DNA of 64,000 nucleotides from Rebecca billardiae RCC1528. Taxonomy: Eukaryota > Protista > Haptophyta. Numbering within the stretch: position 1 is the stretch's first letter; each line of letters opens with the position of its first letter. Position numbers and translations under genes: made by a program. Location of the stretch: NCBI GenBank assembly GCA_965240325.2, contig OZ251225.1, forward strand, positions 1,922,001 through 1,986,000, read 5' to 3'. Positions 22,335-42,213 of the stretch are shown here, piece after piece. The notes below the pieces were generated by a model. The model was given only the letters and a program-made list of their open reading frames with translations. It had not been told where the DNA came from and did no database searches.

Positions 22335-23228
22335 TTATTCGCGCGACGCGGAGCCGCGGACGAGTTCAGGGTTCGAGGCTGAGCCTGTCGTGAACTCATT
22401 GCGAATGTCTTGCATGCGCCGATTGTACGCGTTCCACCAATGGGGTACGTCGTCGAGACTTGCATCGAGCGGCGTGTGTGGGATGCCAGCCAGTGCCCAC
22501 ACCATCGCACGCGCCTCGCGGGGAGATGCGACGACGTTGGCGAACGGTACTTCGAGCCAGGGAGTATGGTTCGCAAGCGCACTGCGCGCCCATGCGTACC
22601 ATTTGCGTTGCGCGCGCGCAAACTTTCGCGACGCATTCGCGGGATCGCATGGCGGGCGCACTCGCCTGGTCCGGTTTTCGAACTGCGTATGCTCGCTCGG
22701 ATAGTGGCCCCAGTCGTTCGTGCGAAACGCCCACTCCCGTGAGCACTCGACCTGCGCTGCGGGCCGTTCCACGACCACAAAGCGCGCCCCTTTGAGCTGC
22801 GCGAGCTCTGGAAGGAGTGTGATCGACGACATGCTATTGCGGAATAATTTGATGACCACGGTGCACTGCTGCGCGCATGCGCTGTTGGCCGCGAGTTTGC
22901 TGTAGCCCTGGCAAAGAGCACGGCGCGTGCCGAGCAGCCGTTCCGACGGAGGTCGCGATAGGTCGGAGTAGAGCTCGGGCACGATGTGCTGAGCGACGGC
23001 GCGCGGATGATCCCTGCGGTGCTCAACGAAGACAGGGTTGAAGAACTCGTCGAGCCCGATCACGCATGGATGGTACTGCAGCGCCGTCATGAAGGTTGTG
23101 GTGCCCACGCGCATCGCCCCGACGAGAACGATGATGTCCGCAGAAGGCAAAGGCGAGCGAGAGGACGTGGAAGGCGCCAGCAACACCGCAAGCGAGAGCC
23201 ATCGTGCACAAGTCGCTTGCCTCGCCAT
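22335..23228 (-). CDS. Sulfotransferase (P-loop/Stf0-like) with N-terminal signal or anchor
   Basis: 5'-PSB-like loop GAMRVGTT followed by LQYHP...EFF; 3'-PB-like FVVVERP...S; start uncertain (23228, ~23255 or 23336). Confidence 0.75.
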   Translation of the reverse strand: MARQATCARWLSLAVLLAPSTSSRSPLPSADIIVLVGAMRVGTTTFMTALQYHPCVIGLDEFFNPVFVEHRRDHPRAVAQHIVPELYSDLSRPPSERLLGTRRALCQGYSKLAANSACAQQCTVVIKLFRNSMSSITLLPELAQLKGARFVVVERPAAQVECSREWAFRTNDWGHYPSEHTQFENRTRRVRPPCDPANASRKFARAQRKWYAWARSALANHTPWLEVPFANVVASPREARAMVWALAGIPHTPLDASLDDVPHWWNAYNRRMQDIRNEFTTGSASNPELVRGSASRE

Positions 23229-23307
23229 CCCTCGCCGGAGTGTCCGAGCTACCATTATTAAGCCTGCGCTGGCGAGCCCTGAGAACGAGCTACTATGGCA
23301 CTTTGAT

Positions 23308-24939
23308 ATGGCAGCCGCCGCCACCCCGGGCTTCATCGTTCGTCGGAGTTATGAGTACGGCGCGGTGATGGACTTCGACTTCGCGTGCCACGCGACGCGC
23401 CTCGACGGCGGCTCGCGCATCCTCGCGCTCGGCGTGTACAACACCGCGTGGTTCCCGCACGTGGTCACCGACCTCCACGCCGCGGGCTGGGACGTGGGCA
23501 TCCTGCAGGCGGGCTCGCCGACCAACAAGACCGTGTGCAGTCGCAGCGGCTGCGCGGCGTGGGGCGTGGGCGACCCGCCGCTGATCAGGTACGCCAAGTT
23601 CGCTGCCTCGCACGGCTGGCGCGACCTGCAGGACGCGCTCGTAAGCGCCGTCGCCGAGTGGCGCCCCGCCTTCGTCCTGCCCGACTACCGCGTCTCCGCG
23701 CAGCTCGTCGAGAGCGCGGCGCGGCAGCTGCTCAAGCTCAAGGCGCGCACGCCCGAGCAGGAGCTCGTGCTGCGCTCGCTCGGGTGCTCGCTGCCGCGGG
23801 CGACGGAGAAGTGGGCCGCGTACAACAGCAAGATCGCGATGGTCAAGCTCGCCGGCGACCTCGGCGCGCGCATTGCGCGCCACACGCCCCTCTCGAGCTC
23901 GCAGGCGCGCGCGCTCGACAGCGGCTCGCGCGAGCGTCTCGCGCGCCTGCTGCCGCTCGTCGCGAAGACGAACTTCGACGGCAGCGGCAAGGGCGTGCAG
24001 ATCGTGCGCACGCGTGCCGAGCTCGACGGCTTGCTGCGCGCCCTCACCAACGGCTCGCAGCCCGCCATGCTCGAGCAGTGGGTCGACGGCTATCAGGTCG
24101 AGTACGCGGGCGCCGTCGTCGACGGCGAGGTGGTGGCGGGCTTCGGGTTGGCGGTCATCGTCGCCGAGAGCGAGGTGGGCCCGCCGGTGCTGCTGCGCAC
24201 GGTGAACCTGCCCGAGGCGGCGCGCTTCTTCGCCGCCTTCGTCAAACGCCTCGGCTTCACCGGCCTCGCCGAGGTCGACATGCGCGTCGACCGCGCAGGC
24301 CGCACCTACTTTCTCGATCCAAACATGCGGCCAGCGCCGTACGTGGGCGTACCCGCGGCGGCGCTCGGGCTGCGCGTGGGGCTGATGGACGCCCTGCTCG
24401 CGCAGATCAGGCGGGGCGCGCCCGTGCCCTTCGAGCGTGCGCACGCGCCCGAGCCGCTGTCCCGCGCGATCAACATCCTGCGCGTGCGCCGGGAGCCGGA
24501 GGGCGCGCTCGCGCTCGCTTACTGCCCTGACGTCTGGCTGCACCTGCCGTGGCCATTCGTGCTGCGCGAGGCGCGCGCGGGCGCGGCCGCGGGCTTCGAT
24601 GCGCGCGAGTGCGCGGTGCGCTTCCGCGGAGACCCGCCCAACGTGGCGCTGCGCCATCGCTGCCCGGCCTCGCTGTGCCCGGGCAGCTGCGCCGCGCCGC
24701 TGCTCCCCGCGCAGCCGCGGCCGCTGCCCGCGGACGGCGCCAGCTCGCTCGTGCACGAGTGGTGCGAGGGCAGCCTGGCGTGGGCGGCCGAGCACCTCGC
24801 ATGCGCGGGGCCGGTGGCACGCGCTGCGCACGTGGCCGCGCGGTACCACGACCACGGGGTGCCACTCAAGCTCTGCGGGCGCCCCGCCGGGAGCCGCGTC
24901 GACAGCCCGAGGTGGAATCTCAGCGAGGCTGGCGTGTAG
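23308..24939 (+). CDS. ATP-grasp domain ligase
   Basis: SKIAM, PLVAKTNFDGSGKGVQIV, EQWVDG, GFTGLAEVDM...YFLDPNMRP; intronless; start 23308 or 23368. Confidence 0.82.
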   Translation: MAAAATPGFIVRRSYEYGAVMDFDFACHATRLDGGSRILALGVYNTAWFPHVVTDLHAAGWDVGILQAGSPTNKTVCSRSGCAAWGVGDPPLIRYAKFAASHGWRDLQDALVSAVAEWRPAFVLPDYRVSAQLVESAARQLLKLKARTPEQELVLRSLGCSLPRATEKWAAYNSKIAMVKLAGDLGARIARHTPLSSSQARALDSGSRERLARLLPLVAKTNFDGSGKGVQIVRTRAELDGLLRALTNGSQPAMLEQWVDGYQVEYAGAVVDGEVVAGFGLAVIVAESEVGPPVLLRTVNLPEAARFFAAFVKRLGFTGLAEVDMRVDRAGRTYFLDPNMRPAPYVGVPAAALGLRVGLMDALLAQIRRGAPVPFERAHAPEPLSRAINILRVRREPEGALALAYCPDVWLHLPWPFVLREARAGAAAGFDARECAVRFRGDPPNVALRHRCPASLCPGSCAAPLLPAQPRPLPADGASSLVHEWCEGSLAWAAEHLACAGPVARAAHVAARYHDHGVPLKLCGRPAGSRVDSPRWNLSEAGV

Positions 24940-25021
24940 TAACTACACGCGCGATCTAGCAGCCCGGCAGTCATCATCAGTATACTACAGTCTAATCAGT
25001 ACGTATAGTATTAGCTACTGG

Positions 25022-28000
25022 CTACAGCCGTGATAATGCTGCTGCTGGCGCCGCCGATGAGCCCACTGTCCAGTACTGCCCCTTGCGCACAGCGTCACCA
25101 AACACGCAATCGTCCCTCCTCCCGCGAGCGATCTTGTTGCAGATGCCAAACTTGGGCGCGATCGCTGACACGCCCTCGTTGCCGAGCGGCGCGTCCTCGC
25201 AGCCGCACAGGTCCGGCGGGATGCGCGCATCCGCTCACGTGCGATTGGGCGGCACGACGTTCTCGGCGAGGTCGAAGGCCCAGGGGACTGGCGGCGCAGC
25301 GCGCGTGCGCGGCGCCAGCCAGCCGAGCAGCGTGCGGTGCAGGTCCAGCCCCGTGATCAGGCGTTGCTCGTTGGCGCGCAGCGCCGCGGCCTGGCGCCCG
25401 TCGAGCAGCTGCTCGGGCACGAGCAGCGTCGTCCACGGCGAGCGGTGCTCCATCTGCACCGACCAATCCGCGTCATGGACGCCCTTCTGCTGCAAGCCGT
25501 GGTCACCGCGCAGCACGGCGATCGTGTCGCCCCGGCTGACGAGCCGCTCGAGCGCGGCGCGCAGCGCGCCGTCCAGATGCTGCGCACGGCGCGCCTGCCA
25601 GCGCGCGATCGCACTACTAGTGGTGTGCGCGGCCGCCAGGCTGCCGAACGCAAAGCGCGGCACGTCCGGCGCGTACGCGTCCCACAGCTGCTCGAGCTGA
25701 CGCAGCGGCCAGTCGCCCACGCTCTCGCCGTCCGCGCTCGGGAAGCAGCTCGGCGGCGTGTCGTGGAAGCGGACGGTCACGCCGTTGGTGGTGTGCTCGG
25801 TGCGACGGCCGAGCTGGCTCAGCTGGGGAGGCACAGGCACGGTCGGCGGCCTCGTCGCCAGCGCGCAGAACAGCTTGTCGAAGCGATGGTCGAACGCAGC
25901 CGCCGCGTCGAAGAAGGTATCCGGCAGGATCCACGGCGAGCCCGCGGGGCAGAACTCCTCGACGAGCATGCACACGTACTCTTCCGAGCGCGCGACCTCG
26001 TGCATCCACACGGGCGCCGCGCGCTCGGCGTCGGCGGTGGCTGCGGCGCCGCCGCCGGCTCGCGCGCGGTTGCCGCGGTCGCACCGCTGCTCGACAGGGT
26101 CGGGCCAGCCCGCGACCTTCACCGTCTCAAAGCCGGGCGCCATCGTCGCGTGCGGCGAGGTGCCCATGCAGCCGGCGAGGAGCGCCATCTGGTTGGCAAT
26201 CGACGCGGTGCCGAGCACGTTGGCCTTCTCAAAGTCGAACGCTCGCACGCGCGCGCTCGGGCGCGCGCTCGGGCCGCGCGCAGCCGCCGACGGTGCCTCC
26301 GCCGAGGCGGCGCGCTCGGCGGCCGCGCCCCCGCGCAGCGACTGCACCCACGCAAACGTCAGCGGGAGGTGGCGCTGCGCGTACTTGCGCGAGACGGAGT
26401 CGAGCTCGAGGACGAGCAGGGAGGGCGGCGCGCGCTCCATCCGCGCGCCGCGCCGCTGCTCGCGCGCGGCTGTGGAGCGGCGCACGAGCCGCTGCTGCCG
26501 CGCGATGCGCAGGTGCACGTCCATCGACGAGGAGGGCTGGGGCGGACGGCCGTCGTGGCGCGGCACGCTCGTCACGTTGCACGCGACGATGACGAAGTCC
26601 TCATCCGGCCGGAGTGGGCCGAGCTCCGGGCAGCCGCGCCAGCCGCGCGGCGCGGTGGCGCACTCGCACGCGCTCAGCGCCTGCGCGCTGCCAGCCCGGG
26701 GCCGCACGCGCGATCCGTCAGCGCGCGTGGCCAGCGCGGTGCGAGAGGCGTTGGTGTTGCCCTGGCAGACGGCCACCTCCGACGCTCGCTTGCCCGTCAT
26801 CTCGGCCTGCGCGTAGAAGCTCCACAGCGAGGGCAGCACGTGCGGCCGCGGGCACGCCCCCTCCGCGCCGCCGGGCGGCGGGGGCGGCGCGCGGCCGCAC
26901 CACTCGGGCGGAATGCCCATCTGCGCGCACGGCCGTTCGGCTGGTACGGGCCGCGGCCCGAGCGACCTCCCCAGCGCTCGCGCCGCCGCCGGCCGCTCGT
27001 CCCGGAGGCCGAGCAGCTCGAGCAGCGTCGCGTGCACGTCGAAGTGCGTCAGCCGCGCGCTCGTCGCGCCCGGCGCGAGCGCGCGGCCGCGCGGCAGCTT
27101 GGCAAACAGGATGGGCTCGGCGCGCTCGCGCTCGCCGGGCGCGGTGAGGAAGTAGGGGCCGTAGTGCAGCCCGTGGTCGGAGAGCACGAGCGTCACCGTG
27201 TCACCCCGCGCCTCCCACCGGCGGAGGAACCCGGCGAGCGGCTTGTCCACCACGCCCGCCAGCGCCATCGAGTCCTCGTGCGAGTCCACCAGAGAGAGGA
27301 ACGTGCCAAACGGGCTGCGCGCGCGCTCGTGCGCGGACGCGAACGCCGTGGCGTAGCCGAGGAGCGCAGCGGCGGCGAGCTGCGAGCCCGCGCAGTTGGG
27401 CCGCGCCCACGCCGCGCAGAAGAGCTGCCCGAACTCCTCGCCGTGGCTCACGTTCGGCCGGAGCGACTGCACCATGTTCGAGTTGGCCACGCAGCCGTCC
27501 TCCGACTTGAGCGTCGCGACCGCGCGCGCGCGCAGCCGGTCCCACAGCCACGGCGTGGCCGCGTGCTCGCCCACGCCCTCGCGGCTGCGCAGCGGCATGC
27601 CCGCGTACAGCGCCGCCTGGTTCGGGCCCGAGTTCGGCCCGAATACCGTCAGGTTGCGCAGCTCGGCGTACCCGAGCTCGGCGAGCGCCGCCGCGGTGAG
27701 CGGCAGCGAGCGGCGGAAGTGCGCGCGCGAGATCGGGTCGAGCAGCACGAGCGGCAGGTCGGGCGGCCGCTCGGCGGCCGAGCTGCCGCGGCGGGCACCC
27801 GCGGGGCCGCTGGCTGGGGCGGGCCACGGCTGCCCACCCAGACGGCGCACGCGCTGCGCGCACACCGCCTGCAGCGGCTCCTTGCTCCCCGCCCGCTGCC
27901 GCTTCGGCGTGCGCCGTGCGCAGCGCACCCACACGCACGCCACCTCGGACGCCAGCGGGTGTGCCGCTGAGCACCAGACGCGCTCCACCCGAGGGGACGT

Positions 28001-29914
28001 GGGACCGATGGTGCGCTCGCGGCACGTGAGCTGCAGCGGCCAGCCAGCCGAGTCGGGCTCCGGCACCCAGCGCAGCGCCGCGCCCTTCAACCCGACGCAG
28101 TTCTTGAAGCGGGGCGCGGCCACTTTGCTCGACACCTGCACGTACGCGCTGCGCGCCGGGACGGCCAAGTCGAGGCCCTGCGTCGCAAACAGCAGCGCGC
28201 TGCCGCGCACGTGGGCGATGGCGTCGAGCTGGGCGCCGCCGCGGGTCAGGAGCGTGTTCGGAGGCAGCACGTCGTGCGTGCAGGCGAGCAGCTGCACCTT
28301 GTACGCGCGCCGGCGCAGCATGCTCACCGCGCGCTCCGCCGCGCTCGGCGCGGACGGCGGCATGCGCGGCAGCCCGTCCAGCGCCGGCCGGCCGCGGTCG
28401 CAGCCGGGCTGCGCGCCGAGCACGAGGTACGTGATCGTGCTGTGCGCGAGCAGCCTGCGCGCGGAGAGCAGCGCGCGCTCCTCGCTACCCTCCGCGTCGA
28501 GCACCATCAGCAGCACCCAGCCGGGCAGCGCCACCCGCCGCTCGTCAAACCAGCGGTCGACGCCAAACACGTCCCGGCCGCTGATCACGTGCACGGGCTG
28601 CCCGTTCTCGCGCGCCACGCGCACCACCGCGCTGGAGGCGGCCCACGCGCCCACGACGACCACGTCGCTGTGCGCAATGCGGCGCGAGAGCGTGCGCTCG
28701 AGGAACTCCGACATGACGAGGCCCGTCGCGAGCACGCGCGCGCCATCGCACCGCTTGCGCCTCCTGACGCGGGGCGATGCGCGCACCGCCGCCGCCCCAC
28801 CTGCCCGAGTCAAGCCACCGCTGCCGCCGCCGACATGCTGTGCCTCAGCCGGCCGCGAGGCGCTGCCGCTCCGGCGCAGCCCTGCGGCCGGCTGCGTGCT
28901 GATGCTGACCGCGCGCTGGACGGACGGGGGCGCGGCCTGGCGGGTGACAATCTCGAGCCTTCTCGCCCCATGGCGCGCACGGGAAGGGCAGTAGCGCGCG
29001 GCTTAGAAGACGTGCGACACGTGTGCGCCCGCGCGCGCAAACGCGAGGTCGTTGCTCAGCGTCAGCTGTGCGCCCGCGTGCGCGGCGTGGCACGTCGAGT
29101 TGCACACGACGCCGCGCTCGACGGCGCGGGTCCAGGCGGAGTCGCGGCCATAGAGGACGCTCTGCGCGTCGAGCGCGGTGGGCATCACCACAGCGCGCTC
29201 CGCCGAGGCGGCGCGCAGGCTGAGCAGGTCCAGCTGCTTCCACCCCGGCACGGACGCGTGCGCCATGTCGCACCAGCTGTGCGTGCGCTCCGCACCCAGC
29301 TGACCGATTTGGCGCGTGTACGCGGGCACGGCCGCTTCATCCGGTCGAAGGACGTGACCCGCGTGTGCGGACTCGCCGTCAGGAAGAGCGCCGCCGAATG
29401 GCCCGCGTTGAAGCCGGTCTCGCAGATGGTGAGGGGCTTGGGCTGGCGGGCCTCGGCGATGGCGTCCAGGTGCAGCAACACGAACGAACGCCACTTGCTC
29501 CGGGTACAGGTAGATACCCCCGGAGAGTTTCGACTTCGAGTGTGTGCCACCCAGCGACGGCACGATCGTGCGCTCCAGCTCGGCCCACGCGATGCACGCG
29601 GCACACAGCCGCTCGCGCAGGCGTCGAGGGCCATTCTGCAGCGCCTCCATCAGCGGGCCGTGCGACTCGGACGCCTGGCGCATGCTGTGCGCCGTCGAGA
29701 AGGCGTCGTCCAAGACAAGGTCGGCGACGCCCTCACACATCCCGTGGCTGTGCGTCCAGCCCGAGCCGCACGAGGGCCGCACCTTGTGCGACCAGCTGGC
29801 GTTGGCGTGATCTAGCCCCGCACCGAGCGCACCGAAGCGACGGCGGGCAAGAAGCAGCAGCGCGCACGCCGCGAGCTCGAGCAGCGACTGGTGGCGCCAG
29901 CGCATGGCGCCCAT
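25022..29914 (-). pseudogene. Disrupted ~1600-aa gene: class I methyltransferase (Methyltransf_24-like) + FkbM-like + two DUF229 (sulfatase/alkaline-phosphatase superfamily) domains
   Basis: ICETGFNAGHS...SFD; VLDAEGSE; LLDPISRAHFRRSLPLT and LELDSVSRKYAQRHLPLT; SDHG/GDHG. Lesions: 4-bp duplication at 29481-29488, frameshift/deletion near 29330, in-frame TAA 29005-29003, in-frame TGA 25237-25235. The frame otherwise stays open to TAG at 25024-25022. Confidence 0.78.
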
Positions 29915-30084
29915 CCACCCGTGCGCTGCAAGTGCTGTGACGATTGCTTGTGCCGCGGCGAAGCCGCCATCCCGCCGCGCTTTGCCGTTAAAAATCGCTT
30001 CCAGAGCGCGCTCGGCGGTCCGGCGGAACACTTCTTTTCTTTTATCCCGGCACTACAATTGACAAGGGGGCGATTCTCATCAGC

Positions 30085-31206
30085 ATGGCGGCCCGTGCCG
30101 GACGCACGCTCGCGCTTTTGCTCGCCGTGGGTGAGGCGGACACGGCGAACGTACGGGCGTGCCGAATCGTACTCGCCCGCTACGAATGGCATACGCTGCT
30201 GCACAACGTGGCCTACCATCGCCTTGCCGGACTCGAGTCGGATTGGATCTATCTCGACGACCGCGACGACCGCACTGGTTCGCTCAGGCCGCGCGCGATC
30301 GCCGCGTGGCTGCAGCCGCTGCGGCACATGCCGCACGTTGAGCTGCTCACCTACTCGCAGAACCTCTCAGCGACAGCCATGGGCGCCTCCTCGCGCACGC
30401 AAATGCACGCGAACCGCGACTGCTACCGTCGCGCGCCCGCGCACATTGAGTGGGTCCTCTTCATCGACGGCGACGAGTATATTGGCTCGCCTGGGAGGAC
30501 CCCGCTCGCGGGTATTCCACCGGACTCGACAGCCCCGTTCAGCATCGGCGCATGGGCGGCGGCCATCCCCGCGCGCGTGCAGGTCGTCGCGCTGCTGCGC
30601 TTCCACTTCTTCAACGAGCAGCTGGATCGCAACGGCAGCACGCGCGTGCCAGAACCGCCTGTCGCGCACGCGGGCCCGCGCTTCTTCGAGCCGCAGTTCT
30701 ACACCCTGGTGGGCAAGCTGCCCGCGTGCCCGGGCAAGACGATGGTGCGAGCGCACGCGGGCGTGGACGCGGGCTGGTTCCAGGTCTTCGAGGCCGGGGG
30801 CACGAAGCCCATTCCAGCCTCGTTGCTGCTGCCGCTGGGCAAGGTGCGTACGCTCAGAGGCCACTGCGACCCGCAGTCGGGGATGAGCGAGACAAAGGTG
30901 CGCAAGATCAACCCATCGTACGACGGTGCATTCCTGTACCACTACTACACCCGCTCGCTGTCCGAGTGCGCCATCAAGAAGGACGACTCGTCACACGGGA
31001 TCGCGTCCATCTCGTCGTACGGGGAGAAGACTGCTGTCTTCCACCGAGCGACGCAGAAGGGCGCCATGGGTCGGTGCGCGCTCGCGCGAGGAGAGGAGCG
31101 GCTGGAGAATCGAGACCTGACGCACCCCGGCCTTGTGCGGGCGGTCAACGAGGAGGTGCAACGCGTGCTAGATCGATCCGCCGCAGCCGTCGAGACGATT
31201 CCGTAA
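30085..31206 (+). CDS. Glycosyltransferase family 92 / GT2-like protein
   Basis: Signal/anchor, YHRLAG...IYLDD, Q..A.RDC, WVLFIDGDEY (DxD), GKTMVR, HYYTRS; intronless. Confidence 0.82.
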   Translation: MAARAGRTLALLLAVGEADTANVRACRIVLARYEWHTLLHNVAYHRLAGLESDWIYLDDRDDRTGSLRPRAIAAWLQPLRHMPHVELLTYSQNLSATAMGASSRTQMHANRDCYRRAPAHIEWVLFIDGDEYIGSPGRTPLAGIPPDSTAPFSIGAWAAAIPARVQVVALLRFHFFNEQLDRNGSTRVPEPPVAHAGPRFFEPQFYTLVGKLPACPGKTMVRAHAGVDAGWFQVFEAGGTKPIPASLLLPLGKVRTLRGHCDPQSGMSETKVRKINPSYDGAFLYHYYTRSLSECAIKKDDSSHGIASISSYGEKTAVFHRATQKGAMGRCALARGEERLENRDLTHPGLVRAVNEEVQRVLDRSAAAVETIP

Positions 31207-32703: not shown

Positions 32704-34701
32704 ATGGCGAAGCGGCAGCGTCTGTCTGGTGACGAGGACGGCGATCGCCGACGCTCGTCGGTGCGCCCCGCGCACGCCGCGCGGTCGCGTGTGCCCTCGC
32801 ACCTGCGCTCTTCCCTCCGTCGGCACTCACCTCGCTCAAGCGCGTCGCACGTGGCCCTGCAGGGCGGCGCTGGTTCACGCGACAGGCGCACGTATGGCTC
32901 GTCTTCCCCGCGCTCAAGAGCGGATGGCGGCGACTCGGACGAGCCGTCGGACGAGAACGAGCGCCACTTCGTCTTCCGCGCGGGGGACATGCTGAATGCG
33001 AGATGTGCGCGCGCGCCGAGCCCGCGCTGCGTCCGTCTGCGAGCGATGCACGTGTGCGACCTGACGCGCGCGCGCGCGCTGCTTGCGCACGTCGCGCTGC
33101 TGTCACAGATCGTGCGGTCTCGCTGCTTGGCACGGGCACGTTCGGTCGGGTGATCCTCGCGCGCGACACGTACGCATCGAACGACGTCGCCCTCAAGGTG
33201 GTGCGTGCCATCAGAAAGTACAGGTGAGCGCGGCGCGACGCGCACGCGCGCGCACCTCCTGTCCTTTGCGCGCGCGTGCTTCTGCTGATGCGCGGCCCTC
33301 GGCGAGTGCGCCCGCAGCAAGGAGGCCATCGTCGAGGCGAACATCCTCTCGGCGGTCCACGCCCGCGCCCGTGAACGGCGCAAGGACCCGTGCGCGCTCG
33401 CACCCGGCCGTGCCCAGACATCGCGCCGGCGCGCACCGTCGTGCGTGCAGCCGACACGACGCGCCTGTGCGCCGCGCGGCGCGCGACGCCGTGGCATGCG
33501 CAGGCCCATCGTTCAGCTGCTCGACCGCTTCGAGCACCGTGGGCACGTGTGCCTCGCGTTCGAGCAGCTCGGGCCGACGCTGCTCGAGGCGCTCGAGGCC
33601 GCGCGCAGGCCGCACCGGCAGACAGCCTCGAGCTATTTCTGCCTCGCTGAGATCCAGAGCATCGCGAGCGGCATCTTCTCGGGGCTCGACTTCCTGCACC
33701 AGATGGAGCTCTCGCACACGGACCTCAAGCCCGAGAACGTGCTGCTCTGCTCGGCGCTCACGGACGACGGCAGGCTGCCGCAGGTGCGCGCGCGCGCGTC
33801 GCCTCGGCCCTCTGCGCGCCCCGCCGCACCGTGTGGGAGATGAGGGCGGCATGCAGTTTCGGCTGCAGCCGATCGAAACGGATACTGTCGAGGCGCGGCG
33901 GCGACACCTGGCCGTGCGCCGGCCGGTCGCTGGCGCCCCGCCCGATGCGAACGCCCGCGCGGCCACAGCGCGACCGATCCCACCGTGGCGGCGCTCGCTC
34001 GCAGCGCACGCCGCGCCCGAGCGCTCACCCGGCCGCCGGCCGCGCGCGCTCTCTGCCGCCCGCCGCCCGCCCCCCTCTCTCCGCGCGCCGCGGCCACCTG
34101 GGCCCTCCCCTCCCTCCCCCTCCTCCGTGCGTTCGTCTGCCTCCCTCTCTCGCGCGCGCAGAGCGTCCGCGTCAAGCTGATCGACTTCGGTGGCGCGACG
34201 TTCGCGCACGAGCACCACTCAGACGTCGTGTGCACGCGGCAGTACCGCCCGCCAGAGGTGACGCTCGGCGTCGCGTGGGGCACCGCTGTCGACCTGTGGA
34301 GCGCGGCGTGCATCCTCGCCGAGCTGTACACCGGCCGGGTCCTGTTCGCGACGCACGACGAGGCGGAGCACCTGGCGATGATGGAGCGCTCGCTGGGCAC
34401 GCTGCCGCAGCGCATGGCGCGACGCGCGAGCGAGCGCGCCAAGCGCTGGTGGCTCAAGCACAACTCGCTCCTCTGGCCCGAGATTGCGCCGAGTCCGCGC
34501 TCGGTGCGCCGCGTGCGCGAGACGCCGCGGCTGCGCGACTTCCTGCAGCGCGACCGGCCGTGGGTGCGGCTGCACGACAGCTTCCTCCACCTGCTCAGCC
34601 AGCTGCTCGAGTGGGACCCGCGCGCGCGCATCAGCGCGCTCGAGGCGCTGCAGCACCCCTTCATGCAGGCGGAGGAGCTGCGAAGGGGCGTGTTCCTATG
34701 A
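32704..34701 (+). CDS. LAMMER/CLK dual-specificity kinase (4 introns)
   Basis: RS-rich N-terminus; spliced LNARYRAVSLLGTGTFGRV, VALKVVR, HTDLKPEN, DFG, TRQYRPPEV, EHLAMMER. Confidence 0.94.
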
Positions 34702-35448
34702 CCGAGCTCGGCGGCGCTGCCCCGGTGCACATGTCTGGCGGGGCGGCGGACGGCTGGCGACACGGCGCCAAGGCGGCAGCCGGAGACTCTAGAGACGGCC
34801 GTCGTCCGTCGACGGCGACGCACGACGATTCACGATGACGATGCCTCCGATCGCGGACCGATCGTCCGATGCTGCGATGGGCCGCCGATGGCTCGTCTTA
34901 GAAATACTCATGCAAGATGCATGTATATATATATATACTGGCGCGGCCGCGCTCCGCCAGAATCCTATTGGTCCATGCTACCCTGGTGCGGACAGAGCTT
35001 GCCGTTACCGGTCTCGACTCAGCGCGCGCGGAGCTGAGCCGCCGTGTCAGACACTAGACACTTAAGACAGTCACTCACACTGTCACAGTCAGTGACAGTG
35101 TCACGCGTCCGAGTACTCCGAGTTGTCACGCGTGGCCCGTGGCGGCCGTGCCTTGAGTCATAAAGACATCATAGTTCATCTCAGTCATATGATGACTATT
35201 GACTCATGCATCAGTCACACTGACACACTCACACAGGCCGACTCGGCGACAGCCACATTCATATTGATTCATCAGCACATATTGGCTTCCTGCCGCCCGT
35301 GCGGCGCACTCGCAGTCGCACGCGGGCCGTCCGGGCTTCGCAGCACGGGTACGATCCCGTCGTCGTCGACCTCCGAGACAGAGAGAGTCGGCGCAGGCCA
35401 GAGCGTGTGTTGGCGGGTTGGCCGTCTTCCATATATATTCTCGGCTCC

Positions 35449-36390
35449 TCAGCACGCGAGCGTCGCCGTCGTCGCCATGCGCTCGTCAGCGCGCAGGCGC
35501 CGGCGCAGCGCGGAGCCTGCGGCCACTGCCAAGACGACCGTGCCGACGAGCGCCACCACCAACACCAGCGCGAGCATGCTCGCACTCGCCGCGTCGAGGT
35601 CGAGCGGCTCGTCCTGGGCGAGATGGCGCGACATGAAGCCGCATTGGCCGAGCACCTTGCAGCGCAACTTTGCAGCGATCTGCGCGAGTTGGGCAGCGGT
35701 CGGCACGGGGGGGTGGGTGGGTCGGTGAGCTGTTGGGCAGCAGCAGAGTCCGGCCGCCACGTAAGGCCGCTCGCGCGTGGATGGAGCTGGATGACTCAGA
35801 CTCACCGTGAAGAAGCATGCGGCCCGGCACGCAGCCGACGGGGGAGGGGACGGAGCGGGCGGTGGGGACGGAGGCGGGGGAGAGGGCGGGGGAGAGGGCG
35901 GGGAAGAGGTTGAGGGCGAAGTCGAGGGCGAAGGGGATGGGGCGGTGCAGTCGAGCACGGTCAAGCCAGAGCAGCCCGCTGTGTCGCATGAAAAGCCGGA
36001 TTGGCCGCAGCTGAACTCGGCAACGACGGAGCTGGTGGTCTGGCGGGGGTCGACGCATGTCAAGGCCACGTTAGGAGGAGGTCCGAGCTGACGGCCATGG
36101 ACGCCGGCTGAGGAGACACGCGCCTCCTCCGCGTCCCCGAGCATACGTGCGCGGCGTCTGTCGACGCAACTCTCTGTAGAGACTTCATCGCAAGCTTCAT
36201 CCAGATCTGTACTCTGCCCAGCGTTGTCGCACGCAAACCAGCAACCCTCGCCGTAGAGTTCAATGTAGATCGTCGGCGCAGAGTTGGCCGCGAACACGCT
36301 GAGAATCCCGTCCTCTAGATCACAGTCGGCCGCGACGAAGGCCGACTGCTGTGACAGCAGCAGCAGCGCTGCGGCGAGCCACGAGCGCAT
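35449..36390 (-). CDS. Type I membrane Cys-rich precursor protein, paralogue 1
   Basis: Signal MRSWLAAALLLLSQQSAFVAA; 5-Cys domain; RRRARML...GRQL linker; 5-Cys domain; Ser/Pro stalk; intron 35805-35680; 4-Cys module; SRHL; TM helix; RRRLR tail. Confidence 0.85.
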   Translation of the reverse strand: MRSWLAAALLLLSQQSAFVAADCDLEDGILSVFAANSAPTIYIELYGEGCWFACDNAGQSTDLDEACDEVSTESCVDRRRARMLGDAEEARVSSAGVHGRQLGPPPNVALTCVDPRQTTSSVVAEFSCGQSGFSCDTAGCSGLTVLDCTAPSPSPSTSPSTSSPPSPPPSPPPPSPPPAPSPPPSAACRAACFFTVSLSHPAPSTRERPYVAAGLCCCPTAHRPTHPPVPTAAQLAQIAAKLRCKVLGQCGFMSRHLAQDEPLDLDAASASMLALVLVVALVGTVVLAVAAGSALRRRLRADERMATTATLAC

Positions 36391-36592
36391 CGTTGGGGCA
36401 GCGGCGGAACTTAAGAGTGAAGTGTCGGTCGACTCGAGGAAGGGCCGAAGGGGTGCTCCGAGCGAGGGCAGTCGCGGCACGCGCCGGACCGGCGCCGCCC
36501 CGGCCGGCGATCAAGTTTTGATAGATATTATTTGTCGTCGTCAATTTGCATGCTGATGTCTGAAGCGATTCTCCGCCGCCCGAGCCCCGGAC

Positions 36593-36784
36593 CTGTCTGG
36601 TACTCTCCTTCGGACTGCGCCGCCATCGTTACTCGGCGGGCACAGGTGACCTGTGCGGGCTGTGCCCGCCGAGTAACGATGGCGGCGCAGTCCGGAGGAG
36701 AGTACCAGACTGACTGACAGGCTGACAGCACTGAGCAGTGAGCACTCGCGTGAAGCGAGTGCGATGGCGGAGAGCACCAGCCAG
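36593..36784. mobile_element. Mutator-like MITE with 9-10-bp TSD and an internal ~50-bp-arm hairpin
   Basis: GCCCCGGAC(C) at 36584-36593 and 36785-36794; imperfect TIR CTGTCTGGTACTCTCC / GGAGAGCACCAGCCAG; absent from the paralogous site near 39705. Confidence 0.8.
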
Positions 36785-38555
36785 GCCCCGGACCAACTGC
36801 TGCAACCAAAGGACCATCAAATACCCTGCGGAGCGCACGCGCGGCCTCGTGTGCGCCTCGAGCGCGTGCGGCACGACGCGGCGGCGAGTGACGAGGCATC
36901 AGCCCAGAATCTGTCTCTGAGCAGCGGTCAGCTTTGCGCGCGCAGCGCGTGGCCGGTCCAGGTCGCGAGCCGAGCGCGGCGCTTGTCGGTGGGTGGGCAT
37001 ATGCCATGAATCATGACCGTCTACTTCACTCGCACGCGCTCGCGCCGCGCTGTGAAAGCATATCGGTAGTTATCGGCTCGCCACGCGCCCGCGCTTGCGA
37101 TGCTCCAGCCGAGCAGGGTGTCGCGGGCAGTCCGGCGGCCCGCGGCGGCGGAGGTCTGGAGGAGGGTGCACACGCGCCATTCAGTGATTGCGGTTCAGCA
37201 GCGCGCGCGGGCGTGGTTCGGTCCACCCTTGCCAGCGCCGCTGCGCGATCGGCCGATCGCTCGCGACGGCCCATCATCGGGCACCACATGCACGGTAACT
37301 GAGACGCGCCGAGCGCGAGACAGCGCGCGAGGGCGGCGGGCGGCGTTTGCTATGATCTCGCGCCGGCGCTGGCCCGGTGCACATGTAATCTGGCGGGGCG
37401 GACGGCTGGCGACACGGCGCCAAGGCGGCAGCCGGAGACTCTAGAGACCGTCGACGGCGATGCACGACGATGCCTCCGATGGGCCGATGCCGCCGATGGC
37501 TCGTCGAAATATTCATATACTGGCGGCCGCGCTCCATAATCATATTGGTCCATGCTACGACGGTGCGGACCTTTGTCAAAAGCTTGCGTTATACGTACCG
37601 GTCTACTGCGGAGCAGCCTGTCAGTGTCACGCGTGGCCCGTGCATCGCAGTCACACTCATGCAGCGGTCTACACTGCTGAGACACAGCCACATTGATGCC
37701 TCGATGCGGCGCTTCCTGCAGCCTCGCACCGGCACGCGTAGACTGACGGACTCGCGTCGTACCGTGGCTCTGAATGACTGATAACATCATTGAGACGTGA
37801 CTTATCGCATCACTCTGAGAGTGACTACTGACTCTGTACATCTTCGCCGAAGTCCGCCTCAGAAATCAGAATCCGGATGGCGGGATGCGGGTGCACTGTT
37901 AGTTAGACTTAGAGTAATCTGTTATTCAGATGACAGATTGTCCTGACTGACTTCAGACTTGAGACGAGATCGAGTCAGCGCGGTACCCTCATCGCGGTAC
38001 CCTCATTGGTACGGTCCTCATCGCCCTCTGCCTCTGGCTCCCAGCCCGACAGGGGTTCCGTTGAAAGCCCCCCCGGCCCGCCCTCCCCCCGCCATAGCGG
38101 GTCACTGGCTGTCGTCCCTGTAACTCATGTGTTTTTAAAAATCAGCTAGTAGTATAACGGTGAGGAGCCTGGCGGTCCGGGGCGGTCGTATCATTGGCGT
38201 TTAATAATGAAATAAATATAATAGTAACTATGACACATGACCGTTATAGGCATACGGCGGTATGGCGATTATGAGTACCGTCAGGCTACACTAGCCGGCA
38301 GCCTATTCGTCGACTGAGTCGTAACGGTAGTCACGTAGTCACTGGTGGACAGCTAGCTGTCGTCTGCTCCGAGTTCTCGGTGCTGCCGATTCAGCCGATC
38401 CGGCATCCGCGCGCGTCGTCCGTGTCGCACGTGGGCGAAGGAATGGTGCGCGTCGGTATGGCCCGTCGTCTGCAGCGGCGGGCCGGGCCGCGGGCCGGGC
38501 CCAGAGTCGGCGGGCCAGAGCGTGTGTTGGCCGTCTTCCATATATTCTCGGCTCC

Positions 38556-39500
38556 TCAGCACGCGAGCGTCGCCGTCGTCGCCATGCGCTCGTCAGCGCG
38601 CAGGCGCCGGCGCAGCGCGGAGCCTGCGGCCACTGCCAAGACGACCGTGCCGACGAGCGCCACCACCAACACCAGCGCGAGCATGCTCGCACTCGCCGCG
38701 TCGAGGTCGAGTGGCTCGTCCTGGGCGAGATGGCGAGACATGAAGCCGCATTGGCCGAGCACCTTGCAGCGCAACTTTGCAGCGATCTGCGCGAGTTGGG
38801 CAGCGGTCGGCACGGGGGGGTGGGTGGGTCGGTGAGCTGTTGGGCAGCAGCAGAGTCCGGCCGCCACGTAAGGCCGCTCGCGCGTGGATGGAGCTGGATG
38901 ACTCAGACTCACCGTGAAGAAGCACGCGGCCCGGCACGCAGCCGACGGGGGAGGGGACGGAGCGGGCGGTGGGGACGGAGGCGGGGGAGAGGGCGGGGGA
39001 GAGGGCGGGGAAGAGGTTGAGGGCGAAGTCGAGGGCGAAGGAGACGAGGCGGTGCAGTCGAGCACGTTAAAGCCAGAGCAGCCCGCTGTTTGGCATGACC
39101 AGCCGGATTGGCCGCAGGTGAACTCGGCAAGGACGGAGCTTGGGCCCACCGTGGTGATCTGGCTGGGCGCGGTGCACGTGATGGTCAAAGTAGGGACAGG
39201 CGCGAGCTGACGGCCATGGACGCCAACTGAGGAGGCACGCGCCTCCTCCGCGTCCCCAAGCATACGTGCGCGGCGCCTGTCGCAACTCGGTGTATCGAGT
39301 TCGTCGCAAGCTTCCTCCAGATCTGAAACCCCATTGTCGCACGCAATCCAGCAACCAGTGTCACCGATCTCAAGGTAGATCGTCGGCGCAGAGGTGGCCG
39401 CCAGCACGTCGAGAACCAGGGCCTCTTCATCACAGTCCGCGATGACGAAGGCCGACTGCTGTGACAGCAGCAGCAGCGCTGCGGCGAGCCACGAGCGCAT
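38556..39500 (-). CDS. Type I membrane Cys-rich precursor protein, paralogue 2
   Basis: Same architecture as paralogue 1; intron 38912-38787. Confidence 0.85.
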   Translation of the reverse strand: MRSWLAAALLLLSQQSAFVIADCDEEALVLDVLAATSAPTIYLEIGDTGCWIACDNGVSDLEEACDELDTPSCDRRRARMLGDAEEARASSVGVHGRQLAPVPTLTITCTAPSQITTVGPSSVLAEFTCGQSGWSCQTAGCSGFNVLDCTASSPSPSTSPSTSSPPSPPPSPPPPSPPPAPSPPPSAACRAACFFTVSLSHPAPSTRERPYVAAGLCCCPTAHRPTHPPVPTAAQLAQIAAKLRCKVLGQCGFMSRHLAQDEPLDLDAASASMLALVLVVALVGTVVLAVAAGSALRRRLRADERMATTATLAC

Positions 39501-39729
39501 CGTTGGGGCAGCGGCGGAACTTGAGTGTGAAGTGTCGGTCGACTCCGAGCGAGTTGAGAGTGCGCAGAGCACCGGCGCGAGCCACGGCACCGGCCCAAGG
39601 ACTGCCGCCGGTGATCGGACCAAGTTTTGATCAAACGTCGCGTCGTCAATTCACAGATCATGCTGATGTCTGACGAGTGACGAAGCAATTCTCCGCCGCC
39701 CGAAGCCCCGGACCAACTGCTGCAACCAA

Positions 39730-40925
39730 TATTTCTGTCGGCTGAACGATTTTTTCCGGCGGCGCTACCATCAGAGGCCACTCGAGCGACTTCGTGTCAG
39801 GCGAGGCAGATCGCGCCAGTGCGAGGCGAGGCAGACGCTCGCCTGCCTCGCCCAGCAGGCGAGGCAGCTAAGCTAGTAAAGCCGCGGCCGAACTTTACGA
39901 AAGCCAAATGTCTGCCGGTGCGCCGCCCGTCTTTGCGCACGGTGACAAGGGCGCGCGAGGGCGCTTCCTCACGATCCCGAAGAGCGCTGCGCGCGGCGTC
40001 GCGTTGGCGGCGGCAGCGGCGCTGGGGTGTATCTTGCCCATTCTGCTTGGCGGTGCGCGCTCATGACGCCTCGGCCGCCGCCACGCCATGCGCGACCGGG
40101 CGTGTCGCCTTCTTGACGGGCAGTGCACACGCCCTTGCAAGCGCACAGCCGTGAAGAGCCGAGAGCGTCCGTCGCGCGCACGCCGCCCACGCGGGATGAG
40201 GTTTCAGGACTATTCGTATGACACTGAGCGATCGCGCTCTGGCATGTGCGAGCCATGATGACCATGGGTAGCAACTACGATGACCACTGCTCACCTGCAT
40301 TTCAGCCGATGACATCCTCTCGTTCAGCGATCTTGACTGCTCTGAACGCATGGCGAACTCGGCGGAGCGCATGGGCAAGGTGGCTTCGTTGATAACACAA
40401 AGCATCCCGCGTGGGCGGCGTGCGCGCGACGGACGCTCTCGGCTCTTCACGGCTGTGCGCTTGCAAGGGCGTGTGCACTGCCCGTCAAGAAGGCGACACG
40501 CCCGGTCGCGCATGGCGTGGCGGCGGCCGAGGCGTCATGAGCGCGCACCGCCAAGCAGAATGGGCAAGATACACCCCAGCGCCGCTGCCGCCGCCAACGC
40601 GACGCCGCGCGCAGCGCTCTTCGGGATCGTGAGGAAGCGCCCTCGCGCGCCCTTGTCACCGTGCGCAAAGACGGGCGGCGCACCGGCAGACATTTGGCTT
40701 TCGTAAAGTTCGGCCGCGGCTTTACTAGCTTAGCTGCCTCGCCTGCTGGGCGAGGCAGGCGAGCGTCTGCCTCGCCTCGCACTGGCGCGATCTGCCTCGC
40801 CTGACACGAAGTCGCTCGAGCGGCCTCCATCAGCGACGGCTTCATGGGCGGTGACAGTTGGCCGTGGCGGGCGTCAATCTCGCCTGCCTGAGCCGTGTGC
40901 GTCTCTTATTCTTAGTATAAACTGT
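39730..40925 (-). mobile_element. Family C insertion (about 140 bp) hosting the nested foldback element
   Basis: ACCAA duplicated at 39725-39729 and 40926-40930; empty site TGCAACCAAAGGAC at ~36801-36814. Confidence 0.8.
39774..40827. mobile_element. Non-autonomous foldback element with 425-bp TIRs and a 204-bp spacer
   Basis: Arms 39774-40198 and 40403-40827 are reverse complements (one mismatch seen near the end); TSD CATCA or CCATCAG. Confidence 0.92.
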
Positions 40926-42213
40926 ACCAAAGGACGCCGTGGTGAGGAGCACACGCGCGGCCTCGTGTGCGCCTCGAGCGCGTGGCACGACGCGGCGGCG
41001 AGTGACGAGGCATCCGCCCAGAATCTGTCTCTGAGCAGCGGTCAGCTTTGCGCGCGCACCGCGTGCCCGCGTGGCCGGTCCGGGTCGCGAGCCGAGCGCG
41101 GCGCTTGCCGGTGGTGGTCGGGGCTGATTAGATGTCATGAATGATGTAATGATGTTCAAATCATGACCGTATTCCGGAATACTTGACTCTACTTCGCACG
41201 CGCGCGCGCCGCGCTGTGAAAGCATATCGGTAGATATCGGCTCGCCACGCGCCTGCGCTTGCGATGCTCCAGCCGAGCAGGGTGTCGCGGGCAGTCCGGC
41301 GGCCCGCGGCAGCGGAGGTCTGGAGGAGGGTGCACACGCGCCATTCAGTGATTGCGGTTCAGCAGCGCGCGCGGGCGTGGTTCGGTCCACCCTTGCCAGC
41401 GCCGCTGCGCGATCGGCCGATCGCTCGCGACGGCCCATCATCAGGCACCACATGCACGGTTGATGGTAACTATTTTAAAAGCGCCGAGCGCGAGACAGCG
41501 GGCGAGGGCGGCAGGTGCCGGGCCGGCGGCCGGCGGCGTTTTACTATAAGCGTAGATGCTGCTAGCTCAAACTATGTCTTACTATGGTCTAGCTTAGGTC
41601 TATGCTGGCCTGATCAGCCCGACGCGGTGGTCGCGCTGCTCGCGTAGCACGCTGCACGGCCTCCGGAACTTCCAGGCTGGCCCGGGCGGCTGATGGCGGG
41701 ATAATTAAGGCTGCGCCGCCTGAGCTGTCAGGAATAATGGCCCGCGGTGCAGGGCGGAGCGCGCAGCGTGGAGCCCGCACCAGCGGGCCCGAACCACGTT
41801 TCAAAAAGATCTTTGATCAAGAAAAAAGGGACGGGGGGCGATTTTTAGGGCTGGCGGAGACCGAGTTTCGAGTTTTTGAGATCGCATAGAGAGGTCTATT
41901 AGGCCGAAAAAAAGCACGCCCAGCTCATTCCCCTAAGTAAAGTGCGATCTGGACGTCAGCTGGACGTGACATTAGTGTAACGGTTCGTTACGAGCGCGAT
42001 TTTAAGTATGAGATTGCCGCCAACCGCCAACCGATAAAACGGCAAGGCAAGGGCTCGGGAAATTTGATCACTTCTAAATGTGAATAGTAAAATGCTCTCC
42101 CCGAGCGCGCCTGTCGCCTCGCAGGCCGCGCGTCTCGCCCTCTCGCTGAGCCGCTCTCCCCGAGGCTGAGCTCGCGGCCCGCCTGTCACCTCGCAGGCGC
42201 GCGCCACGGACAC

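Follow-up and report, generated by a model that had tools for sequence, protein, structure and literature searches.

Variable cysteine modules flank a conserved linker in a predicted family of stalked membrane proteins from the haptophyte Rebecca billardiae

The haptophyte Rebecca billardiae RCC1528 has a genome of 72 Mb, assembled in 41 contigs. We analyzed a window of 64,000 nucleotides from this genome (contig 7, positions 1,922,001 to 1,986,000; G+C content 68.5%), which carries two tandem genes, hereafter called A and B, whose predicted products are membrane proteins with two cysteine-rich modules joined by a linker. Our best explanation for these genes, to which we assign a probability of roughly 0.5, is that they belong to a lineage-restricted and fast-diversifying family of surface recognition or adhesion proteins, with a conserved linker that may serve in protease processing or docking. 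The pair had been described by a model in an original prediction, which reported tandem precursors with hypervariable domains of five cysteines (Cys) each, set on both sides of a linker with Arg-x-Leu (RxL)-type processing motifs.

Both genes lie on the minus strand as direct repeats with a spacing of about 3.1 kb, at the positions given in the original prediction, and the open reading frame (ORF) and splice models agree with this placement. The predicted products are type I membrane proteins of 271 (A) and 272 (B) amino acids, each encoded by two exons. In both proteins a signal peptide is followed by a 5-Cys N module, a 25-residue linker, a 5-Cys C module, a Ser-Pro stalk, a CxxxC-FFT motif, a juxtamembrane segment, a transmembrane (TM) helix, and an 18-residue tail. 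The peptides quoted earlier are present, namely the linker RRRARMLGDAEEAR.SS.GVHGRQL, the variable pairs LEDGILSVFAAN versus EEALVLDVLAAT and NVALTCVDPRQ versus TLTITCTAPSQ, and SRHL near the membrane. The statement that the copies keep 10 Cys residues is correct for the head, which has 5 + 5, but each protein has 15 in total, and the four Cys of the membrane-proximal ectodomain (CxxxC and Cx5C) and the one that forms the last residue had been overlooked. This final cytosolic Cys ends all six full-length proteins of the family described below (..LAC or ..SQC) and is a possible lipidation or sorting signal.

A genome-wide collection of related genes, as proposed in the original prediction, placed the pair in a family with six full-length and three truncated members. 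Paralogue C is located on contig 7 at 3.19 Mb, and paralogue D, which is 99% identical to C, on contig 3 at 3.15 Mb. Paralogues E (contig 12) and F (contig 5) are more distant, with heads about 40% identical to that of A. All six full-length genes share a common architecture with intact frames, and even at this low level of identity they retain the Cys scaffold, signal peptide, and TM helix. An SR(H/F)L motif followed by acidic residues is likewise kept in E and F. The stalk varies from 30 to 63 residues among paralogues, and the heads of E and F have 6 + 6 Cys, with an odd total of 15 in the ectodomain of E. The intron occupies an identical phase-0 position in the six genes, and its lengths are 126, 126, 169, 169, 125, and 149 nt. 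Because these lengths are not divisible by three in C, D, E, and F (4/6), splicing is needed to bring the TM exon into frame. We therefore take A, B, and the four full paralogues to be genuine protein-coding genes, as their sequences suggest.

The family also includes evidence of more recent copying. The 99% identity between C and D extends across the gene and at least 300 nt downstream, and the two sequences cease to be related some 120 nt ahead of the start codon, which indicates a recent inter-chromosomal copy with a breakpoint just 5' of the gene. Adjoining F on contig 5 (2,830,676-2,838,259) are three 100%-identical tandem units of 2184 bp. Each unit contains a truncated copy consisting of an F-derived signal peptide and a 6-Cys N module that ends with DSGS and a stop codon, directly after the last Cys of the module and just ahead of the basic site. 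The C modules of E and F carry a Gly/Tyr-rich insertion with YxY runs (e.g., YSYSYSYSY), followed by RRRL and acidic residues. This insertion resembles the isodityrosine cross-link motifs of extensins and contributes a fourth RxL site.

The ratio of nonsynonymous to synonymous substitutions (dN/dS, or omega) differs sharply along the genes. Computed by the Nei-Gojobori method for A versus B, it is 1.48 in the N module, 0.23 in the linker, 1.70 in the C module, 0.15 in the stalk, and 0 in exon 2, with dS values of 0.14-0.18 throughout the 5' half and 0.03-0.07 in the converted 3' half (see below). Pairwise GY94 estimates (F3x4) among A, B, and C gave an omega of 1.7-2.3 for the N module in all three comparisons, 0.3-1.25 for the C module, and 0.17-0.5 for the remainder of the gene. 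Of the 28 variable codons in the N module, 20 carry at least two base changes, and identical codons are scattered closely between the variable ones. In codons whose amino acid is unchanged, differences affect just 4-20% of synonymous sites. Across the six genes, every Cys is kept, and 16 of the roughly 54 positions in the N module are invariant. In deep comparisons, dN in the linker and stalk is far lower than dS.

We then fitted site models to A, B, and C using our own three-taxon star-tree implementation of M1a and M2a. Three taxa have a single unrooted topology, and thus a mosaic history cannot produce topological conflict in this setting. The likelihood-ratio statistic for M2a over M1a was 33.7 for the head, 24.5 when columns within two of a gap were removed, and 32.4 for the N module alone, in which 42% of sites were assigned an omega of about 20. 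By comparison, null simulations under the fitted M1a (n = 21) gave values no greater than 7.5. A statistic of 60 for the whole coding sequence was discounted because the converted 3' half breaks the uniform-dS assumption of the model. Positive diversifying selection on the N module in the A-D clade is therefore favored.

The two copies arose within a tandem duplicated unit of about 2.65 kb (34704-37353 versus 37354-41512), whose flanks have diverged and are 82-94% identical where they can be aligned. Within the genes, A/B DNA identity rises and falls from part to part, with 94-100% in the 5' leader plus signal peptide (97-100% in the signal peptide), 72-80% in the N module, 92% in the linker, 66-70% in the C module, and 99.4% across the stalk, intron, and exon 2. 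The signal peptides differ by one residue, with no DNA difference from 36340 to 36389. Directly 3' of the stop codon, identity falls to 80%. A single-breakpoint maximum chi-square test for this mosaic gave a value of 72.9, which none of 1000 permutations reached. The near-identity reported for the 126-nt intron is in fact complete (126/126), which is beyond what protein-level constraint would demand, and the 3' identity of A and B points to recent gene conversion.

Exchange of segments includes the dispersed copies as well as the pair. The C module of B is 91.5% identical to that of paralogue C and 81.6% identical to that of A, which makes A the outlier, and the signal peptide of A is nearer to that of C. 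Among A-D, identity is 96-99% in exon 2 and 94-100% in the intron, but only 68-79% in the N modules. The original prediction had named dN/dS well below 1 in the Cys domains, together with gene conversion as the sole cause of the 3' identity, as the outcome that would speak against it; what we observe is that diversification and conversion are both present.

The linker between the two modules is the best-conserved segment of the ectodomain, with a deep dN of 0.44 compared to 0.6-0.9 in the modules. Each of the six paralogues has the same residue at ten of its positions (R79, R80, E89, S93, S94, G96, H98, G99, R100, and L102). Between A and B, its dS is normal (0.16) but its dN is low (0.04; omega about 0.23), and therefore its conservation reflects purifying selection rather than homogenization. 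AlphaFold assigned the linker a predicted local distance difference test score (pLDDT) of 26-35, and the segment is probably disordered. A 29-residue linker query against the whole genome found matches in no gene outside the A-D paralogues. A match on contig 38 (E = 0.2) was rejected because it lies in an Arg/Ala-rich frame that is not gene-like.

Each protein carries four RxL motifs, compared to 1.1-1.6 expected from composition (P = 0.02-0.07). Three of these sites hold their position in both clades, between paralogues that are about 40% identical, as RML/RVL, RQL/RRL, and the juxtamembrane RHL/RFL, and this conservation makes them functional candidates. The first site reads RMLGD, RVLTE, or RVLAQ and matches RxLx[D/E/Q] in all six genes; its longer form in A-D is RARML, and RRVL and RRRL occur in E and F. 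The acidic run after this site is EEAR or EEAH in A-D and SEER or DEER in E and F. On the basis of these sequences, cleavage at RML, RQL, and RHL is plausible. The earlier claim of an RxL-type processing linker is thus borne out as far as the sites are concerned, which are conserved in 6/6 paralogues, but the conservation of the linker itself speaks against a spacer that is merely excised.

Precedents for such processing exist in other secretory pathways. Processing at RXL itself has been described solely for diatom biosilica proteins, for which the protease was not identified (PMC5647440, PMC5525289), and plant RRXL sites are cleaved by site-1 protease (PMC5258720). In Phytophthora, RXLR is cut after Leu and EER after Arg before secretion, and only sites in disordered stretches close to the signal peptide are cleaved (PMC11754927). 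The R. billardiae genome has at least 38 loci matching the subtilase family PF00082, and tandem arrays on contigs 5 and 12 also hold PF13640/PF00082 matches. The linker, with its RxLx[D/E/Q], acidic EE(R), and HGRxL elements, might therefore be a maturation or docking site for a protease of the secretory pathway, a role that we propose only tentatively. Cleavage there would leave the two modules joined either non-covalently or by a disulfide.

Searches for relatives returned nothing that would connect the family to known proteins. No Pfam family was matched at E values up to 10 by either head, and neither NCBIfam nor the PDB sequences yielded a match. No relative was found among 5.8 billion proteins in a word-indexed search with the whole of exon 1 or with the head alone, among 1.84 billion representative proteins in an exhaustive profile search, or in the metagenome and viral contigs searched. 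Two actinobacterial repeat proteins that appeared as profile matches were judged spurious because they aligned via six short stretches resembling "VxAxxSDGxVYHE." A feature search of the ESM Atlas gave a best score of 0.77 and no relative.

Structure prediction was of limited help. AlphaFold gave an unusable model of the whole head (pLDDT 40). For the N module of B alone, it gave a model of moderate confidence (pLDDT 73), in which a helix is followed by a hairpin, a short helix, and a strand. This fold had no credible match, with a best E value of 0.64 in Foldseek against the PDB, TM-scores of at most 0.52 to mixed families in the atlas, and a best Z of 3.0 in a wide VIA-align search. A complex prediction for the N and C modules returned a score of 0.01, which is no answer and is evidence neither way. 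Membership in a known structural family, which the original prediction had listed as a finding that would count against it, was found in none of the Pfam, NCBIfam, PDB, or fold searches. Judging from these searches, the family is found only in this genome and is lineage-restricted and new.

We envision a head of two small disulfide-rich modules that would be displayed on a short Ser-Pro stalk, which is probably hydroxylated and O-glycosylated in the manner of extensins. A single TM helix followed by a short basic tail would serve as the anchor. In the A-D clade, the signal peptide, linker, stalk, juxtamembrane segment, TM helix, and tail may form a chassis that is held constant by purifying selection, with gene conversion between paralogues 3' of the head adding to this constancy. 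Meanwhile, the N module would gather replacements on a fixed Cys/Gly/Trp scaffold under positive diversifying selection. From this arrangement we infer a role in extracellular recognition or adhesion with a quickly changing partner, which could be a virus, a grazer, a gamete, or a non-self cell.

Such a family would be of interest for several reasons. Haptophyte surface recognition, including mating, virus attachment, and cell-cell discrimination, has almost no molecular handles, and these proteins offer a concrete candidate. The linker provides a defined natural substrate for asking about R-x-L secretory proteolysis beyond diatoms, oomycetes, and apicomplexans. Furthermore, the locus is a small and clean case in which concerted evolution, seen in the identical intron, stands beside diversification within one gene.

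Several points weigh against a fast-diversifying recognition family with a processed linker. Each of the three pairwise N-module comparisons is non-significant when tested against an omega of 1. For the C module alone, the M2a over M1a statistic among A, B, and C is 2.9, which is not significant, so that the diversifying selection predicted for both modules is supported for the N module (omega 1.7-2.3; 32.4 against a null of at most 7.5) but not for its neighbor. In the E/F pair, omega is 0.45-0.56 in both modules, and the acceleration is therefore confined to the A-D clade. Only three sequences that are effectively independent, all from one genome, entered the selection test; it was run with our own code on a gene whose history is mosaic, and its signal could be inflated by multi-nucleotide mutations or micro-conversion. 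With regard to processing, the first RxL site ends at residue 84 in A and 81 in B, about 60 residues past the predicted signal cleavage and behind the folded 5-Cys module, and distal or structured RXLR sites in oomycetes are not cut (PMC11754927). No kexin-type convertase (S8 plus P domain) was found in the genome. The sole P-domain locus (contig 37, 709,316-709,624) was rejected as a kexin or furin candidate because the frame examined lacks an S8 domain; the P domain is at the N-terminus of a protein longer than 1300 residues. Finally, no transcript-derived protein matched the family in the protein databases searched.

The features of the two genes and their surroundings are collected in Table 1. 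The foldback element upstream of B is not present in the matching flank of A, and it breaks the flank homology between 36785-37337 and 39705-41512. An inverted repeat with 51-nt arms (98% complementary) and a 14-nt loop lies at 36595-36710, about 200 nt upstream of the A start codon. Downstream of A (22335-31206 and 33985-34701) are ORFs that are sulfotransferase-like, ATP-grasp-like, DUF229 (sulfatase superfamily), and GT2-like glycosyltransferase, along with a protein-kinase exon. No functional link to the family was found among the neighboring ORFs. Elsewhere in the genome, the prolyl-4-hydroxylase-type domain PF13640 has at least 54 loci over the cut-off.

Table 1. Positions in the window of genes A and B, their predicted parts, and associated features
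Feature	Position	Strand	Counterpart in B	Details
Gene A, whole coding span	35449-36390	-		Exon 1 35806-36390, intron 35680-35805, exon 2 35449-35679 including stop; ORF and splice model, same in five paralogues
Gene B, whole coding span	38556-39500	-		Exon 1 38913-39500, intron 38787-38912, exon 2 38556-38786; ORF and splice model
Gene A signal peptide, residues 1-21	36328-36390	-	39438-39500	Hydrophobic N-terminus, small-residue cleavage motif
Gene A N module, residues 22-77	36160-36327	-	39279-39437	5 Cys, hypervariable
Gene A linker, residues 78-102	36085-36159	-	39204-39278	Multibasic RxL, acidic EE(A)R, SS.G.HG, second RxL
Gene A C module, residues 103-148	35947-36084	-	39054-39203	5 Cys
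Gene A Ser-Pro stalk, residues 149-187	35830-35946	-	38937-39053	51% Pro, 31% Ser, five SPP+ motifs
Gene A CxxxC-FFT motif, residues 188-195	35806-35829	-	38913-38936	End of exon 1; C...C(F/L)(F/V)T then intron in 6/6 paralogues
Gene A intron	35680-35805	-	38787-38912	126 nt, phase 0, GTGAGT...CGCGCAG
Gene A juxtamembrane segment, residues 196-228	35581-35679	-	38688-38786	Two more Cys, SRHL, acidic run
Gene A TM helix (229-253) and basic tail (254-271)	35452-35580	-	38559-38687	Tail ends in Cys; Kyte-Doolittle 19-residue maximum 2.97; RRR after helix
A/B gene-conversion tract	35439-35951	-	about 38546-39058	Stalk, intron, and exon 2, to just beyond stop; 3 differences in about 500 nt
Foldback element upstream of gene B	39774-40827			1054 bp; 425-nt arms 100% complementary, 204-nt loop

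Other explanations must be considered alongside the one we prefer. In full, the original prediction held that cuts at RML and RQL remove the linker and leave two disulfide-joined chains, and that a further cut at SRHL sheds a soluble head with a pheromone-, allelopathic-, or toxin-like function. We consider this scheme unlikely. It would account for the retention of all three RxL sites in both clades, the odd Cys count (5) of the N module in A-D, and the predicted disorder of the linker, and it could draw on the truncated copies on contig 5, whose ends coincide with the last Cys of the N module and thereby suggest a separable module, as well as on cleavage after R-x-L in three other secretory systems (PMC5647440, PMC11754927, PMC5258720). 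However, the linker surpasses the rest of the ectodomain in conservation, which would not be expected of a discarded spacer, the monobasic second site matches no characterized protease, and a stalk, TM helix, and conserved tail would be elaborate for a shed product. The insulin-like logic on which the two chains were based fits poorly for the same reason and because four ectodomain Cys had gone uncounted. Together with the 6 + 6 Cys of E and F and the odd total of 15 in E, these extra residues make the argument from Cys parity weak; the five Cys of the N module in A-D imply only that one is free or bonded outside the module. Likewise, the analogy to toxin and pheromone precursors takes no account of the membrane anchor and Ser-Pro stalk of the product. 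A haptophyte system for self/non-self, gamete, or virus-facing recognition, whose head is cut by an R-x-L-directed protease into two associated chains, also strikes us as improbable. If this were true, haptophytes would join diatoms, oomycetes, and apicomplexans, the groups from which RxL-type processing is known to date, and the protease would have a conserved and positionally defined natural substrate.

A structural role is similarly doubtful. The proteins could be extensin-like components of a scale or coat, with a Cys head for cross-linking or anchoring that became variable as constraint was relaxed after duplication. The Ser-Pro stalk, the many prolyl-hydroxylase-type genes, and the Tyr-rich YxY loops of E and F, which are like the cross-link motifs of extensins, would all fit, as would the lower omega of the E/F pair and the lack of pairwise significance for an omega above 1 over whole modules. 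Under relaxed constraint, however, omega should not exceed 1 and scaffold residues should be lost, whereas the Cys and other scaffold positions are invariant, all frames are intact, and a class of sites with an omega well above 1 is strongly favored; a stalk of 39 residues is also short for a structural rod. Very unlikely, in our view, is an inverted arrangement in which the conserved 18-residue peptide between two RxL sites is a bioactive product and the Cys modules are carriers or pro-domains. Plant peptide-hormone precursors do hold conserved mature peptides behind RRXL (PMC5258720), and the linker has RxL on both sides in 6/6 genes and is under purifying selection as the best-conserved ectodomain segment. 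Carrier domains, however, would not be expected to show a strict Cys scaffold or positive selection, and a membrane anchor and stalk would be purposeless for a released peptide. Moreover, this peptide differs substantially between clades apart from about 10 fixed residues, and its motif was found in none of the other genes in the genome. Least credible is the notion that the genes are silent or decaying duplicates whose patterns are functionless by-products of duplication and conversion, which we regard as extremely improbable. A family found nowhere else, with three truncated copies and transposon-like foldback insertions nearby, might give this impression, but decay is at odds with the intact two-exon frames of all six genes and their conserved splice sites, with a dN well below dS in the linker, stalk, exon 2, and deep comparisons, and with the persistence of Cys scaffold, signal peptide, and TM helix at about 40% identity.

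By architecture, the nearest known systems are hydroxyproline-rich proteins with a head on a Ser-Pro stalk and the type I RXL membrane proteins of diatoms, and the family belongs to neither. It resembles extensins and chimeric hydroxyproline-rich glycoproteins in having a Ser-Pro(2-4) stalk under a globular head, many prolyl-hydroxylase-type loci, and, in E and F only, YxY motifs. Blocks of Ser-Pro(2-5) repeats, the hallmark of extensins, are present over 39 residues in A and B and over 30-63 residues across paralogues. Unlike extensins and the pherophorins of volvocine algae, the proteins described here are membrane-anchored rather than wall-embedded, their stalk is just 30-63 residues long, and their head is split by a basic/acidic linker. 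No pherophorin domain was matched in either head in Pfam at E values up to 10.

The consensus of the Plasmodium PEXEL motif is RxLxE/Q/D. The first site of A-F fits RxLx[D/E/Q] and is never RxLR, the remaining RxL sites mostly do not fit, and the acidic run after the first site ends in the EER of RXLR-EER proteins in E and F only, compared to EEAR or EEAH in A-D. RXLR-EER and PEXEL motifs lie in disordered N-termini near the signal peptide of soluble effectors (PMC11754927), whereas here they lie behind a folded Cys module (pLDDT 73) in a TM-anchored protein. The host-translocation context of those motifs has no equivalent in this family. Plant RALF precursors combine RRXL, YISY, and a four-Cys peptide (PMC5258720), whereas A-D have RARML, lack YISY, and have no RALF match in Pfam.

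The diatom proteins silicanin-1/SAPs and silaffins/cingulins share with this family a signal peptide, a luminal or extracellular region rich in Cys or Ser, one TM helix, and a short cytosolic tail (PMC5525289, PMC5647440). The R-x-L motifs are a further likeness, being proposed or demonstrated cleavage sites in diatoms (PMC5525289, PMC5647440) and predicted sites here. In diatoms, the motif closes a short pro-peptide that directly follows the signal peptide (PMC5525289, PMC5647440), whereas the sites of A and B flank an internal linker, with one more by the membrane. There is no sequence similarity between the two groups, A and B lack the silica-related Lys/Ser or Asn/Gln regions, and the host in this instance is a haptophyte.

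Insulin-type prohormones have a poorly conserved connector with dibasic flanks and six Cys that form two interchain bonds among their links, whereas here the linker is conserved, the second flank is the monobasic RQL, and the Cys count is 5 + 5 (+4). Conotoxin precursors, gamete-recognition proteins, and variable antigens have conserved flanks around a fast-evolving Cys framework. The family in R. billardiae resembles these groups in its invariant signal/pro-region and Cys scaffold, its replacement-rich positions between Cys residues, and its tandem and dispersed paralogues that exchange segments. It differs from them in that A and B are stalked type I membrane proteins rather than small secreted peptides and have no homology to those groups, and the evidence comes from three paralogues in one genome. 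The family is new, yet it is of a familiar kind, in which a head with a variable Cys framework is carried on a conserved chassis.

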